This document shows positions 3,301-63,765 of a DNA stretch of 64,000 nt, in pieces (position 1 is the stretch's first letter; every line of letters begins with the position of its first letter). The stretch is from contig OZ176055.1 of NCBI GenBank assembly GCA_964247055.1, forward strand, positions 8,990,001 to 9,054,000, read 5' to 3'. A program made the translations under genes and the position numbers. This DNA is from Paragordius varius (lineage: Eukaryota; Animalia; Nematomorpha). Below the pieces are notes generated by a model that saw nothing but the letters and a program-made list of their open reading frames with translations, was not told the origin of the DNA and did no database searches.

Positions 3301-6036
3301 ACGTATTTACTTTTAATATTATTATTTTTTAACCTAATTTTCTCCTTTTATCATATTATATATTCATATATTTTATATTAATAATGTTTATTTAAGAACC
3401 AATTTTTTGTTTCAAACTTATATCTTCAAATTCAACAATATTATTCAATCATAAATATTTTATATTGAAATGGTAATATTTAATTTTATGTCAAAATCAT
3501 ATTAAAATTAATAATATTTTATGAACATAAAGATATACGGTTTCTGAAGTCGATTAAGTAGTTAAATTAAGAGAATAGGTTCAAAATAATAAATATATTA
3601 ATGATACAACGGCTGTTTGATTGATTAAGTCAAAAATAGCTTAGTTTGTTTTGTAGGAGCAACTTAAAGTGCAAATGGTATAGGTTATGAAAAAAATCGT
3701 AAGGTTAAAACAAAATTTTTTGTCTCTTTTAAATTTTACATTTTGTTTTGCTATTATAATTTGAATGTTAATTTGTATATGCATATAGATGGTTATACGT
3801 GAATGTTAGACCATGGCCAGAAAACTGCATGTTAAGTGATCCTTTAAATCCGCCCCCCATGGCTCAACAATGTGAAATTCGAGTCATTGATATGCATACT
3901 TTAACGGTGTTGTGTTCTTTTATATTTTTATTTACTTTTTTTTTATTTTTTCCGCCTTCACAGGTAGTTTGTATAAAGACAAAAACATAAATAGCAAGAT
4001 TAATATAGTTTTTTTAGCTCTTTAGGCTCTCTTTTGTATTTTGTGGTTGTAAAATAGTGGAATAGAGTTATGAATTGGTAATATACAACAATTGCAAATT
4101 TAACAATAGAATTATAATAACATTATAAAAGTATGGATGTCTTTAGTATAAAAATAAAAACATTTTATCTATGAAGTTTTTTGTCTGTAAAATTTCGGTT
4201 TAATTTCAATTTTTGCTGTAGAATAAAGGATTAAAAGTGTTACTGCTTTGTATTTAAACACTTTGTTTTATAAATCTGCCGCCTATTATAATAGATTGTA
4301 CCAAATGTAATATACAGTTCCCATCTTGCCTATACACCCAATGATGAATGTTACTTTCTTTTCATGGATTCTTGTTCGGATTTCATTGCAAGGTGCTTAG
4401 TTTTAACACATAAAATGCCATTTCAAAATTCTAGTTGGTTTTTTATATCACACAACAAACAACGAAACTTTAGCCTATAAATTTTTTAAGAGCCATATTT
4501 TAGGAAATTAAACAATTGATAACTTATATGACTGAGATTTGATGGAATATGGGGTCAAGAAAATAATAACCCGCGTAACACATTTTAAGTCTACCTAATT
4601 TTGCTACAAGAAAAATATAAAGCTTTCATAATTATGATTAGTTACAATTTATTACGACACTGTTTTACAGTTAAAATTGAAATTATACGGATAAAATGCA
4701 AAAATTTAATGACAAATTGTTATAAACTGCAAAAGAAATTGTGATGTATATTGGTAACACAACCAATTTAATATCAACAAATTAAGGTTTGAAAATGTAT
4801 GATTGTGTTTTAGAAAAAAATATTTTATATTTTTACGTTTTATCGTCTATATTTGTCAGTTTTTACTGTAAAATTTACTTTTTAATACATATTTTACGTT
4901 TCAACTTATGTTTCAAATTTATCTACATCTTGTCTTTTCTACTAGTGGTTCTGAAAACAAAAACGCCTATATATGGGATAAAAGTAGCAACAACACTAAT
5001 TTATGTGTGGCTAAATTAAGGCATCGCAGTGTTGTTAATTGTGTTGCATTTTGTCCAACTGACCCGGAAATTTGTATTTCTGTGGGCAATGACCATGAAA
5101 TAAAGGTATATATTATTATCTTACTTATGTCTTTAATTTACTTTTTATCGTATAAAAATAAAATCATTACAATTGAATTATTAGATTTTTAATTTCAATA
5201 ATATATATATAATTTATTTATATATATATTATTCCATAAATATGGTTAAAATGATTATTATTATTAATAAAAGCTTTTTACATTATTTTAAGTTTAATTT
5301 GACGGTGTCAAAATACTTTAAAGCTACCATTTTATCAGGGAAAATTGGTTTATTTGCAGCTTATGAGTTTATATACGCCTATTATAAAATCTCATAATGC
5401 GTATGTTTATTACAGTTGAAATTAAAATTATATACAGATAAAATTAAAAACATATATAGACAATATTATTTATCAAAAAGACCTCTATAAACTTTTTGCA
5501 TTTCCATATAACGTATTAAATTTAAATTGTAAAATATATATACCGATCTGTATTTCTTACTTTGCAATTCAAAACAATGTTGTATTAAAAAAAGTAAGGG
5601 TTAAAAAGTAAGTACAACAGTTTTTTAAATGGGATATTTGTATTGTTGAAAGACGTTTTTTTCTGTATATTCCCAATTTTAACTATATTTGTATAAGTAA
5701 AAATTGAAATTAGAAAGAAACATAATAATTGAATATCTTCATAAAGTCAACTAACTATATTAGTTTAATCTTATTTTTCTCTAACATTTCGTTTTCTGTT
5801 GCAACATAAAAAATAGAGATGTGGATTTGTCAGACATCCAATATATATTTCTAAATTGTAATCATGGTAAGTAGGTATAATAAGTGAAAATTAAAGAAAT
5901 TAGGCTTTTTAAGTTTACCTCTTTATCCATTATTTTTACTGTATTTTATGTGATTTAGATTTGGGTTTCACGAAGGAAATATGCAAAGCTTAGACATCAT
6001 AACTCATTAGAGCCCATCTCATCTTACTTAACATGA
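341..6036 (+). CDS. FBXW5: F-box/WD-repeat protein 5, 3' portion (5' end lies upstream of or at the start of the window)
   Basis: Exons 341-496, 836-1084, 1674-1840, 2658-2734, 3789-3906, 4295-4392, 4946-5105, 5959-6036 have GT-AG ends and compatible phases. They read EKYLIFTTGSHSYVPHQVGFKRI...FDSIDMVLEMHGHIVGLSLDRENRWLYVNVRPWP...PPPMAQQCEIRVIDM...HLAYTPNDECYFLFMDSCSDFIASGSENKNAYIWDK...LRHRSVVNCVAFCP...HEIKIW, collinear with the FBXW5 C-terminus as I recall it (KYLIFTTG, PHQIGIK, HGHIIG, AYTPNDECFFIFLD, ASGAED, H.DVVNSV.F). Exon 1674-1840 is the least certain. Confidence 0.9.
3216..3680. mobile_element. MITE with TACCATTTGCACTT TIRs, related termini to the 21-mer family
   Basis: TACCATTTGCACTTCAAG...CTTAAAGTGCAAATGGTA flanked by TA; degenerate sibling at ~6387-6840. 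Confidence 0.75.
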
Positions 6037-7539
6037 ACCAAATATGAATTTTACCCAAATAATACCTAGCAAAAATTTGTTATAAATTATTTTTATTTAT
6101 TTAAATATTTGTTAATTATTAGATATAGTATTTAGTAGAATTAATATGATAGTAATTTATTGTTAATAAAGCTATTTTACAATATCTCGTGTTTAAATTA
6201 AGATAATATCCAACTATGCATATGTAACTAAATTTCAAATATAATAATTAGAGAAATGTCGTTTAGAGAAATTATAAAGCTAAAAAGTCAATAGAGTTTA
6301 TTTATTAAACAATTAAACTAAAAAATATCATATTTTGTGCCGTTATGGGTGCTTATATAAGTTGTATGTTAAAACATTTGCATTATACTATTTGAAATTG
6401 AAGAGTGTCCTTAAACACTTATTTGGTCCTTAAATATTTCAAGTGTCCTAGAACACTTCAAGTTGTTAGTTAAATTTTTTATTGATTTAAACCCAATTTT
6501 ATTTATTTATATAAATTTTTACAATTAAAAATAAAATTTATAACTTATTTTTTCCAATTAAATAAAATTATAAACTTATAAGTGTGTTTAATAAAAAATT
6601 GGAAATAAAAAATACAAAAAACATTAATTTAGGTGCTTTATAAATATTCAAAATAATTTTCAAGATATATGGTTTTTTGAATGATCAAAAGTCGATAATG
6701 ATCTTGATGTTAAATAAAAAAAATAGATAAAAAATAATTAAATAGGTGAATATACACGATTTGATTGATAATAGTTAAAAAGAAAACAAAAAAATTTTAG
6801 GACCAATTTGAAGTGTTCAAGTACACTTTTAAAATCGGTATACATCCAAATATTATTAAATTTACATAATATAATTATGAATGTATAACTATTTTGCATG
6901 ATCACAATTACTATAAAATAACCAACAAATATATATTAGCATTAACTCAAAATAAAGTTCTATCACAGGGGTGTTCAACACAAATATCTTCGCTGCTCCT
7001 TTAAAAAATAATTGTAAATTTTAGATAATGCATCCAAAGAATCGTATATTTTGATTAAATTCAATTTCATATATTTTAACATTTTTTAGAGCACTTTTGA
7101 ATACCGAAAAAGTGGACATGCTTGGTTTTAAAAATATGGATATTCTTATATAAACATATTTACCTAAAGTTTTTACGTTTTGTCTATACTTTCAATTTTT
7201 AAGAAATATATAGAGGTGCAATCAACATAAGATGGTTTTAGTTTTAATTTGTAAAATATATCTTGCCAATAACTTTGCTATTGGTTGTAAATATATTAAT
7301 GTTCTAAAAAATTTAAGGGTATTAAAATCGCTATCTTGAATTGACCTTTGACAGACACGAAAATTTGATTAAAAATAACCTTACCATATCTCAATATATT
7401 ATATATGATTAAAGTATTTATTTGTTTGTGTATGATATAGTAATCCCATTTTTGGGATGATGGATAATAAAACATTAATTGAATGATTGCCTATAACAAA
7501 ATTTTTTTGTAAATAAGTATTTTGAGTTAGAGAGGTATA

Positions 7540-13400: not shown

Positions 13401-14761
13401 ACTTATATAACATTATTAAACCGAAATATATAAAAATATTGTTCAAAAATACTTGATATTACTTATTTAAGCTAAAACCGAAAGGTAAAAATTTCGTCAA
13501 CGTGACATGTGTCAAATTGTAAAATTAAAAAATAATATAAGATAAACCGCTTTTTCTATTTCTATCAATATTAGATGTAATTTATGTAAAAATAGCTTTA
13601 GTTTTACCCTTAAAATTAAATGAAGACGATATTTTGCAAAAATTATGTATAATAAAAATGGCGTTGAAGTAGTTTGAGATGGAACTTTTTTTCAAAACAA
13701 AATTTTATCAAGATATTTTGGCATATTTATATTATTTTTATCAGGATAGAAGCATAAATTTAAATTGGTACCGTTTCCTTCAGCATTTTTTAAAAATATT
13801 AATTTAAATTTAGTCTGGGGTATTTAGACAACCCAATTTGAATCAAAGTGTTAATATTGCCGTTCATCAAAAGTCATTTTGAATTAATATTTTTTTATAT
13901 ATTGTAGTAATTTTATATAAGTTTAAACTTTTGGAACTAATATACACCTATTTGATTTTAGACGTTCTGTGTTTAATACTGTCCCAATTCGTATTGAGTC
14001 TACAAATTTTTTGAAAAATAGGTGTTATTATTACGCTAATATTAAAGCAATTTTTATATTATAACATATAATATTTAAAGAACCTCATTAAGTTGTTGCC
14101 TTATTTTTATTTAGCTAATATATGTTAGAAGTAAATTTTTACTTTGAGGTTTCTACATAAAATATGTAATATCAAGTTTTGTGGATGAATTATTTCATAT
14201 TTCGGTTCATCACTGTTTAAGTGCAAATTTTTTGAAATGGTGTCAATTTATTCCAGATTTTTAAAAATATTCATTTATGCAGGCTTGAGGTCCCCAAAGA
14301 CCCCAATTAGATCGGAGTAAAATGAATTTGTGTATTCAAGTGTTAATATTATTAAGTGGTTGATTTACAAATTTAGTCTGAATTAAAACCCCTTAAATGT
14401 ATAATCAACCAAAAAATTGGTATGTGTGCGATATAATAAAATGAATTTTACATATTTTAGATACAATACAGCCAGCCTTGTAATTTAAAGTTTATACGTG
14501 CGACTACCAGGGGTAATAATAACTTATAAGTTATAATAGTTTTAGTAATTACTTTTTATCTAAGCTTATATTAAGATATGTTTGCAACCTAAAATTATTT
14601 TTTACAAAATGCTTATAGTTTTCAATTTTTAAAAATTAATGTGCATTGCTTGTAAAATTTATATCAAAATAATAAATACATTTACATAACTATATACCAC
14701 ATACGCCCCGTAATATGATATAATTGCATGCATAAATTGCACATGTATTTAAAATTTTGAA

Positions 14762-26075
<11,314 letters not shown>

Positions 26076-53446: not shown

Positions 53447-55262
53447 ATGGCTCGCATGGATGGTCGAAATTTTAATGAAATAAGGAACTTAAGTTTAAAT
53501 TTTATTTTACCTTGTTTTTAGATATAAAAACCGATATTATAAATGCTGCGAAGGGCTCAGCTTATATGGAACAAGGAAACACCAAAGTTGTTTGCTCTAT
53601 ATTTGGCCCAAAAGAATATATACAAAAACGAAAAGCCTCTGAAAAAATTAACCAAGCTGTTATTGAATGTAACATAAAGTATGCGCCTTTTTACGAAAAA
53701 TCTCAGGATTTGTTGTATAAAAATAATACGACACAAACTTATTCATACTCAAATTTGGTTAAAGAAGCATTAGAACCATATATTAATACAGTACTAATAA
53801 CCTAATTTTTAGTACCAATATCCAAAATCTAAAATTGAAATAAATTTATTGGTTTTGGAGAATGATGGCTCACTTTTGTCCGCATTGATTAATTGTGCAA
53901 GTGTCGCAATCGTTACTGCGGGCATTGAAGTTTTTGATATTCTTTGCTCTTCAACCCTTTTATACACTACAAACGATAATTTACTCGTAGATCCTATCTA
54001 TGATGAGCAAGTAATCTTATAAAATAATTAAACGATATTTTAATGCTGGATAAATACCTTTTTTCATTCAAATTTAACATTTTTTCAACCAAACCCAACA
54101 CCTTTTCGTCCAACTTAACATTTATTTTTAAACTTCCTTATAAGGCTTTATAATTATCAAGTGTTGAGTTATATGTGATAATTCAATAACTAAAAGTTGT
54201 ATCGTACTGATGAGTGCTAAAAAGCTTGGTATTTTCTATTTAGGTTTTCAGTTAGTTTCAGTTTATAGAATGCCCTTTCTTAACCTTTTCAAAACGATTT
54301 TTCAATCCAATGTTTTGAGTTTTTGAGAAACGTTTTAATCGAGAATCCGTTTTCAAAATAACTATGTTTTTTTTAATCAATTCTATTTCAATGTTCAAAT
54401 TTTATTCATTTTTTATAAATGTAAGCTTTTAATTTTTATGATTTGAAACAAATGTTAATGGTAACTGCTTCATTTGATTATTTTTATTTTCAATATATTA
54501 AAGTTTTATTTCGGATCTCGTTTGGCATTATCTAAATTTTTTCAAGCGCCGAAATTATAATTATATAACTTGAAAAATTATATAAATTTAAAGATAAATT
54601 GCTGTATTGTATAAAAAGGTTAACCAAGACTCAATGAATGAATGCATACTAGCGTACATGCCTCAATTAAATCAAATTTCCATGTTGGAATTTCAGGGGT
54701 CATTTGATCAAATAACGTTTCAAAAGGTTTTTTACACAATTGTTTTTATTTTCAATGTGTTTTTTTGATACAAAGGCTGATACCGGAATGATAAGTTGTT
54801 TTTTGAACTGTTATTTTGCTTAGGGTTCTTTAATTTTTAACATATTTTTTTACACGTAGAGCATACAATAAATATATGTAGTTTATGTATGTCTATTTAA
54901 GATTATTATTCACAATGCAAAAAAATTAGAGTATCTGTAAATTAACATTAGGCTTAGATTCACATTTATATGGCCAAAATGGAATTGACCACATTTTTAG
55001 CCAAAATCAATGGTAGGCATTACGTTCAGAACTGTTTTTTAAATATATTTGAAACAAATTGGAGCAAAAAAAAAATTACCATTTTTTATTATTTTTTTAG
55101 ATACTCAATCACACTATGAGTGCGGCAAACAAGATACAGGAATATCTTAAACATATTTGTCATGAATGGATAAATAATAAATGTCCTCAAAAATATTTTT
55201 TTCTTTATAATCGAACAAAATTATATATTTTTATTTTATATATAAGATGTGGCATTTTGTAA
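53447..55262 (+). CDS. EXOSC6: Exosome complex RNase PH-like subunit MTR3 (EXOSC6-like)
   Basis: Exons 53447-53492, 53522-53790, 53813-54010, 54619-54726, 55101-55262; the exon 4 acceptor and the 3' end are uncertain. Motifs AKGSAYMEQGNTKVVCSIFGPKE, KYAPF, EALEP..YPKS, VLENDGS, AGIEVFD, DP, AYMPQLNQIS fit MTR3 better than RRP41. Confidence 0.8.
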
Positions 55263-62907: not shown

Positions 62908-63765
62908 ATGCCTGCTGTATCTGTAAAAGACGTAGACCAACAGGAATTCGTTGATGAATTAGCTTCTTTTATCAAAAAGTATGCATTTTAGATCTCTTAC
63001 ATGTATTTTTACATGTTTGGTTTGCAAATTTGCTATAAAATTATGGTTTTAAATTAATGCTTATAAAACCTTTCCATTAATTTAGGAGTGGGAAAATAAA
63101 GCCGCCAGAATTTGCTGAATATGTCAAATTAGGTACTATGAAAGAACTGGCTCCTTATAATGAAGATTGGTATTATGTACGTGCAGGTATAAAAATTTAT
63201 ATTGTAGCATCGATGGCAAGACATTTATATATTCGAACTCCTGCTGGTGTTGGTTCTTTTACCAAAATTTATGGAGGTATATTATGTGTTTGTTAAAATT
63301 ATTTTATAGCCCGTAAAAACAATGGAGTAATGCCAAGTCATTGGGTGCGTGGCTCCTCTTCTATAGCCAGAAAAGTTTTACAATCGCTTGAACAAATGAA
63401 CCTTATTGAAAAAGATAAAGTTAAAGGGTAATACATTTTGCCTATACACTAAAATTAATTATTAAGAATTAAAAGTTATATAATAGACAGATACATTTTA
63501 GTAAACCTTGATTTTTAAATAATTTTATTATTACAGTCATAGAATATGCTTCATTTCTATGCAATATTTTGTAACTAAAAATAGATTATATTTTCAAAAA
63601 ATCAATAAATGTATAATCTTATAAGTTTTACATTTTGTCTCTATAATTTTAACTTTTACTGTATTTAGTGGTCGTAAACTCACAAGTCAAGGGCGAAGAG
63701 ATTTGGACCGAATAGCTAATCAAATTCATAAGAGGAAACATGCAATTGATGTTGAAGATGAATAA
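62908..63765 (+). CDS. RPS19: 40S ribosomal protein S19 (eS19), 151 aa
   Basis: Exons 62908-62978, 63086-63186, 63208-63276, 63310-63427, 63669-63765 give [151 protein letters not shown]. Confidence 0.97.

Follow-up and report, generated by a model that had tools for sequence, protein, structure and literature searches.

The locus considered here raises the question of whether a segment of just 22 nt, flanked on both sides by sequence that encodes parts of one conserved protein domain, is an intron that has to be removed for the gene to be read at all. It lies in a window (the whole stretch of DNA that was analysed, 64,000 nt) from the horsehair worm Paragordius varius, with a G+C content of ~26% (26.9% in the genome of its relative Gordionus), in an assembly of 110.6 Mb, versus the 200–300 Mb reported for studied nematomorphs. 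On the forward strand, positions 53791–53812 read GTACTAATAACCTAATTTTTAG, which is 22 nt long and has GT at its 5′ end and AG at its 3′ end. When the frame of the upstream exon is carried into this segment, it meets TAA at 53803–53805, and when the frame of the downstream exon is extended upstream, it is blocked by TAG at 53810 and by TAA at 53798 and 53795. A first-pass annotation of this DNA had taken the segment for an obligatory intron on the grounds that its length is not a multiple of 3 and that it holds an in-frame TAA, and had placed a further intron, of 29 nt, at 53493–53521; the sequence and the frame reading bear out both claims, with the 29-nt segment also running from GT to AG and read-through from the ATG at 53447 stopping after 24 codons. 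Neither length is divisible by 3, and read-through of either segment reaches a stop codon.

From these frames and the comparisons described below, we consider it highly probable (roughly 90%) that 53791–53812 is a genuine U2-type GT–AG intron, 22 nt long and in phase 0, in the single-copy MTR3/EXOSC6 gene of a nematomorph, and that this intron and the 29-nt phase-1 intron 269 nt upstream would both be obligatory for a frame of 260 codons. A ciliate-type code, with TAA and TAG as sense codons, was rejected, and the standard genetic code applies, because a frame of 1779 codons elsewhere in the window is free of all three standard stops. That frame is a single exon at 14753–20089 with a FAT domain, belonging to a PIKK-family kinase gene; no other open frame in the window comes near it in length, and its G+C content is raised, at 33%. 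Also rejected was a reading of the 22-mer as a repeat or introner, since it occurs only once in the genome; the one 2-mismatch match found is at chance level, a control pattern likewise giving one.

Gene model and identity of the exosome subunit

The gene model (Table 1) comprises five exons with 780 coding nt. It was searched exon by exon, and the frames were joined only to look for stops; in addition to Pfam and structural chains, we used a profile of 79 full-length homologues built for this analysis, and protein P0151 of Gordionus sp. m RMFG-2023 (XP_065322695.1, named by NCBI "exosome complex component MTR3-like"), which is the best named relative of exon 2 among the 1.8 billion representatives searched. 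The summed alignment score of exons 2 and 3 is 372 for Gordionus and 317 for the next best.

Table 1. Exons and introns of the MTR3 gene model (positions in the window; paired profile numbers separated by a slash are the residues on either side of a junction; "profile" is the 79-homologue profile)
Feature	Positions	Strand	Length	Description
Exon 1	53447–53492	+	46 nt	ATG, 15 codons and base 1 of a split codon; R-x-DGR-N, at the start of the RNase PH fold
Intron 1	53493–53521	+	29 nt	GT..AG, phase 1; profile 41/42/43 continuous
Exon 2	53522–53790	+	269 nt	First part of RNase_PH (PF01138, E 1.2e-14); best named relative Gordionus MTR3-like
Intron 2	53791–53812	+	22 nt	GT..AG, phase 0; Pfam 91/92, 2wnr_B 115/116, profile 126/127
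Exon 3	53813–54010	+	198 nt	End of RNase_PH and start of the C-terminal half; 55% identity to P0151
Intron 3 (predicted)	54011–54618	+	608 nt	GT..AG, phase 0; profile 191/192
Exon 4	54619–54726	+	108 nt	Y-M-P-x-LNQI motif of the MTR3 C-terminal half
Intron 4 (predicted)	54727–55100	+	374 nt	GT..AG, phase 0; profile 227/228; counterpart is Gordionus intron 5 (46 nt)
Exon 5 (tentative)	55101–55262	+		Coding to 55259, TAA stop at 55260

The outer exons were placed by collinearity. Exon 1 is collinear with profile positions 26–41, a weak match on its own (E 0.15), and has a local match to P0151 (RMDGRN/RSDGRN). Downstream, the apparent stop codon at 54019 falls within an intron, and the gene runs on through introns of 608 and 374 nt, a continuation that had been overlooked in the first reading. 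For the first of these introns, the closer AG at 54593 would, as acceptor, bring in an in-frame stop. Exon 4 aligns by tblastn to residues 205–236 of P0151 and matches profile positions 196–229 (E 9.7e-5), and exon 5 is collinear at profile positions 229–254 (E 4.2 alone), with a local match to residues 250–268 of P0151. Over its last 26 codons, exon 5 has the look of non-coding sequence, with a negative codon score, and the true 3′ end is therefore uncertain. Pfam RNase_PH_C (PF03725), searched against the genome and against exons 4 and 5, gave no match at the MTR3 locus, and a search of the protein and transcript collection by way of the Gordionus orthologue found no entry from the same species.

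The subunit encoded by the gene can be told from its relatives mainly through the orthologue. Exons 2 and 3 jointly cover positions 7–130 of the RNase_PH profile, and when the exons are scored directly, MTR3 and RRP41 are nearly tied. For P0151, in turn, the score is 113 bits with human MTR3, compared with 57 for RRP41 and 26 for RRP46, and its other named relatives are MTR3. The genome also holds a separate RRP41 gene (L004; 47 bits over 53 residues), an RRP46-like gene (L006) and a PNPase gene (L003/L008). The assignment of the gene as the MTR3/EXOSC6 orthologue holds, at the level of sequence comparison, because P0151 favours MTR3 and because the genome has RRP41 and RRP46-like genes of its own. 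MTR3 is an essential, RNase PH-like ring subunit of the RNA exosome. With human EXOSC6 and yeast Mtr3 (PDB 2nn6_F and 4oo1_F), the predicted protein shares the RNase PH-like fold, the ALEP motif followed after 6 residues by YP(K/R), and a C-terminal P-x-LNQ, but its identity to them is ~30–35%. As far as we know, human EXOSC6 has no introns, so that intron positions cannot be compared with those of the human gene.

Protein continuity and intron positions

The flanking segments each match RNase_PH when searched alone, with abutting profile coordinates, and so the exon–exon continuity across the 22 nt is, as judged from these alignments, not a product of chance. Residues 1–87 of exon 2 match positions 7–89 of PF01138 (E 1.2e-14), and residues 2–39 of exon 3 match positions 93–130 (E 7.7e-9), so that exon 2 ends at position 91 and exon 3 starts at 92. 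Archaeal Rrp41 chains likewise cross the intron with zero offset (115/116 in 2wnr_B and 116/117 in 8xfx_A), and tblastn alignments show no gap there (133/134 in P0151, 137/138 in P0002, 135/136 in P0010). At all four junctions, the 79-homologue profile is unbroken (Table 1). The earlier claim of a conserved 6-residue spacer across the junction also stands: ALEP-YINTYQ-YPKS here is equal in length to ALEP-TINLLQ-YPKS in Gordionus and to ALEP-AVRLGR-YPRA in human MTR3.

The Gordionus gene (locus L012), whose model was rebuilt exactly from the RefSeq protein, provides a direct comparison of intron positions. It has five GT–AG introns, of 40, 40, 42, 46 and 46 nt, the first of which is without a counterpart in the Paragordius gene. 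Gordionus intron 2 (40 nt) lies at amino acid 25 in phase 1, in the codon two residues before KTD, which is the site of the 29-nt intron; Gordionus intron 3 (42 nt) lies at amino acid 133 in phase 0, where it splits EPTINL/LQYPKS, and the 22-nt intron splits EPYINT/YQYPKS. Thus, codon, phase, flanking protein motifs and GTA..TAG ends are all shared with the two micro-introns, whereas the Gordionus introns are about twice as long, and all five of them fall at 40–46 nt compared with 29, 22, 608 and 374 nt here. Given the shared codon and phase, the micro-introns would therefore be old and would have become shorter in this lineage. Towards the 3′ end, the gene has introns of 608 and 374 nt (54011–55100), where Gordionus has 46 and 46 nt (L012, 3747–3949). 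On this comparison of the two gene models, within one gene the 5′ introns have shrunk and the 3′ introns have grown. We note in passing that two deposited Gordionus protein variants depart from the spliced model, P0003 beginning inside intron 2 (L012, 3117–3156) and P0152 reading into the last intron (3904–3949), which suggests either intron-retaining isoforms or annotation uncertainty, even at intron lengths of 40–46 nt.

Splice signals and competing explanations

The best U1 snRNA gene in the genome keeps ACUUACCUG, and in the best U2 gene the GUAGUA box that binds the branch site is intact; since both snRNAs are canonical, it is likely that the ordinary major spliceosome removes the micro-introns. 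As to the genomic arrangement of these genes, dozens of U2 copies or fragments occur in 270 kb of contig 3 (~257,000–527,000) and near the ends of contigs 4, 6 and 8, and U1 copies are grouped on contig 6, at ~565–633 kb. Across the four micro-introns examined, the 5′ sites have in common only GT followed by A or T, and all four end in TAG, the two in MTR3 having a run of five T and then AG. The 5′ splice site of the 22-nt intron agrees with the U1 consensus at GTA only. Pairing of its adenosines with the U2 GUAGUA box, counted by hand, is 4/6 for A15 (CCTAAT), 5/6 for A10 (TAATAAC) and 6/6 for A7; A7 (TACTAAT, at positions 2–8) stands 7 nt from the 5′ end and overlaps the 5′ site. The CCTAAT adenosine, which the first-pass annotation had proposed as the branch point, is a plausible candidate, being one of two that are sterically possible; the other is A10, with a 10-nt loop. 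Splicing would then proceed by intron definition between a minimal GTA 5′ site and a T-run/TAG 3′ site, with the branch adenosine probably at 14/15 (7–8 nt from the 3′ end, giving a lariat loop of ~15 nt) or at 10. Retention of either micro-intron would shift the frame into a nearby stop, so that an unspliced RNA would encode a truncated product and probably be degraded.

A minimal 5′ site, reduced to GTA, would also fit a reading in which the 22-nt intron exists but its splicing is inefficient, with many transcripts retaining it and being lost to nonsense-mediated decay. There is a precedent in very short microsporidian introns, whose median splicing efficiency is ~25% (cited in PMC13644364). 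This reading, which differs from efficient splicing in degree only, is one that we hold to be unlikely, as inefficient removal would sit poorly with a gene that is both essential and single-copy. The remaining explanations would do away with the 22-nt intron itself. One is that a different pair of donor and acceptor sites is used and the intron is longer. We listed all GT/GC..AG pairs that keep the frame open. The shorter alternatives with a GT donor, at 53758–53812 (55 nt) and 53791–53860 (70 nt), do leave it open and come closer in size to ordinary animal introns, the remaining pairs being longer or starting with GC; but they would delete 11 or 16 residues that align without a gap to Gordionus, human and archaeal homologues, among them the conserved Y/F-P-K/R-S motif and the ALEP helix, and the Gordionus intron is located at the 22-nt position. 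A longer intron in place of the 22-nt one is accordingly very improbable. For the 29-nt segment, no frame-keeping pair other than 53493–53521 preserves the R-x-DGR start together with the KTDIINAAKGSAY block.

We attach equally little weight to the possibility that the locus is a decaying pseudogene, in which the 22- and 29-nt segments would be small insertions that begin with GT and end with AG by chance. The odd, AT-rich tail of exon 5 fits such a history mildly at most, and is not specific to it. Against it stand the location of both segments exactly where the Gordionus orthologue has introns, and in the same phases, the five exons that are all open and collinear with the profile, and the finding of no other MTR3-like locus in the genome for what is a core exosome subunit. 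Splicing of two obligatory micro-introns is thus the reading that we retain: every homology test run agrees that both are correctly delimited and that the gene is MTR3/EXOSC6, as the first-pass annotation had it. Its description of the 22-nt segment as the strongest proof of micro-intron splicing goes further than the data; homology, reading frames and intron orthology all support splicing, but "proof" is too strong a word for what they provide.

Other short introns and comparison with known systems

Short introns are also seen at other genes. In RPS19 (63087–63425 in the window), a 21-nt phase-1 intron lies at 63187–63207; its length is a multiple of 3 and it contains no in-frame stop, so that retention would add 7 residues in frame and cause no truncation. 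A second RPS19 intron, at 63277–63309, is also in phase 1 and is 33 nt long, just above the limit of the <30-nt class. Pfam S19e coordinates run on across both (22–53, 55–76 and 78–113). Outside the window, a locus with a gene for a paralogous RNase PH subunit of the exosome (Rrp42/43/45-like; L002, contig 4, ~3.507 Mb) has on its reverse strand, at ~1637–1666, a likely GT..AG intron of 30 nt with an in-frame TAA, and a candidate intron of ~54 nt (~1456–1509) just upstream of it. In the RRP41 paralogue, the first intron is long, and the gene gave no further micro-intron; genes of the proteasome family, searched as a source of split matches, have mostly long introns. A de novo scan of the window, in which open frames were joined over GT..AG pairs of 16–60 nt and compared with decoy dinucleotides, showed no enrichment, and a codon log-odds filter on the same scan brought no gain, because codon usage differs too little here between coding and non-coding sequence. 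Rfam found nothing in the whole 64,000-nt window.

The mitochondrial genome shows a further feature of the lineage. Contig 44 is a mitochondrial genome of 15,693 bp with COX1, and carries dozens of inverted repeats that are 95–100% complementary, with arms of up to 208 nt; 12 of the 13 largest palindromes lie within long mitochondrial open reading frames. Long perfect palindromes in mitochondrial protein-coding genes are a trait of Nematomorpha (PMC6649704), and contig 44 shows this "coding palindrome" trait. A myxozoan or dicyemid origin of the DNA was also weighed, and was rejected on the grounds of these palindromes and of the affinity to Gordionus. At ~6750–7450, directly upstream of COX1, it also has a tandem array of hairpins of 49–52 nt.

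We lean towards the reading that obligatory introns of 21–30 nt came about independently in a third lineage of animals, the horsehair worms, the first among ecdysozoans, in which cap-proximal introns (40–42 nt in Gordionus) underwent lineage-specific shrinkage and downstream introns grew more than 10-fold. If this is true, one spliceosome would remove introns of 22 nt (with a lariat loop of at most ~15 nt) and of 608 nt from a single pre-mRNA, which would point to a position-dependent, 5′-end mode of intron recognition. The hairworm locus is a clean case, because a relative has orthologous introns of 40–42 nt, from which one can read where the introns lay ancestrally and in which direction their length changed, namely by shrinkage; and an obligatory 22-nt intron in an essential gene would be a good substrate for work on the minimal distances between 5′ site, branch point and 3′ site that an animal spliceosome accepts. 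On the practical side, such genes will be broken by gene finders that accept no intron below ~30–40 nt, and the broken models may contribute to the low BUSCO scores and the apparent "gene loss" that have been reported in Nematomorpha.

To our knowledge, introns of less than 30 nt were long held to be absent from animals. The published animal examples that we found, as of September 2026, are confined to dicyemids and myxobolid myxozoans: ultra-short introns have been described in myxobolid Myxozoa (median 22–27 bp) and in Dicyema japonicum (Hadjez et al., Mol Biol Evol 2026, PMC13644364), with a 5′ signal reduced to "GTa". Nematomorpha are not mentioned in the main text of that paper, nor are introns mentioned in the Gordionus genome preprint. 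Judged from the gene model, the MTR3 locus would be a solid addition of <30-nt introns in a third animal group. What it has in common with Myxozoa and Dicyema is considerable, taking in GT–AG introns of less than 30 nt at conserved positions between conserved exons, a GTA 5′ signal, a canonical U2 snRNA, and a parasitic animal host with an AT-rich genome. It differs in its lineage, Nematomorpha being ecdysozoans, in the clear T-run and TAG 3′ ends of its micro-introns, and in that only the first two MTR3 introns are tiny, those that follow measuring 608 and 374 nt; short introns are therefore not pervasive within the MTR3 gene.

Beyond animals, introns of this size are familiar from protists, at ~25 nt in Paramecium and 18–21 nt in the Bigelowiella nucleomorph. 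Those of Stentor are shorter still, at 15–16 nt (cited in PMC13644364). As in the hairworm gene, canonical GT–AG splicing operates in these systems at 15–25 nt, and retention usually leads to a premature stop codon. These are, however, protists in which nearly all introns are tiny, whereas here a bilaterian mixes tiny and ordinary introns within one transcript.
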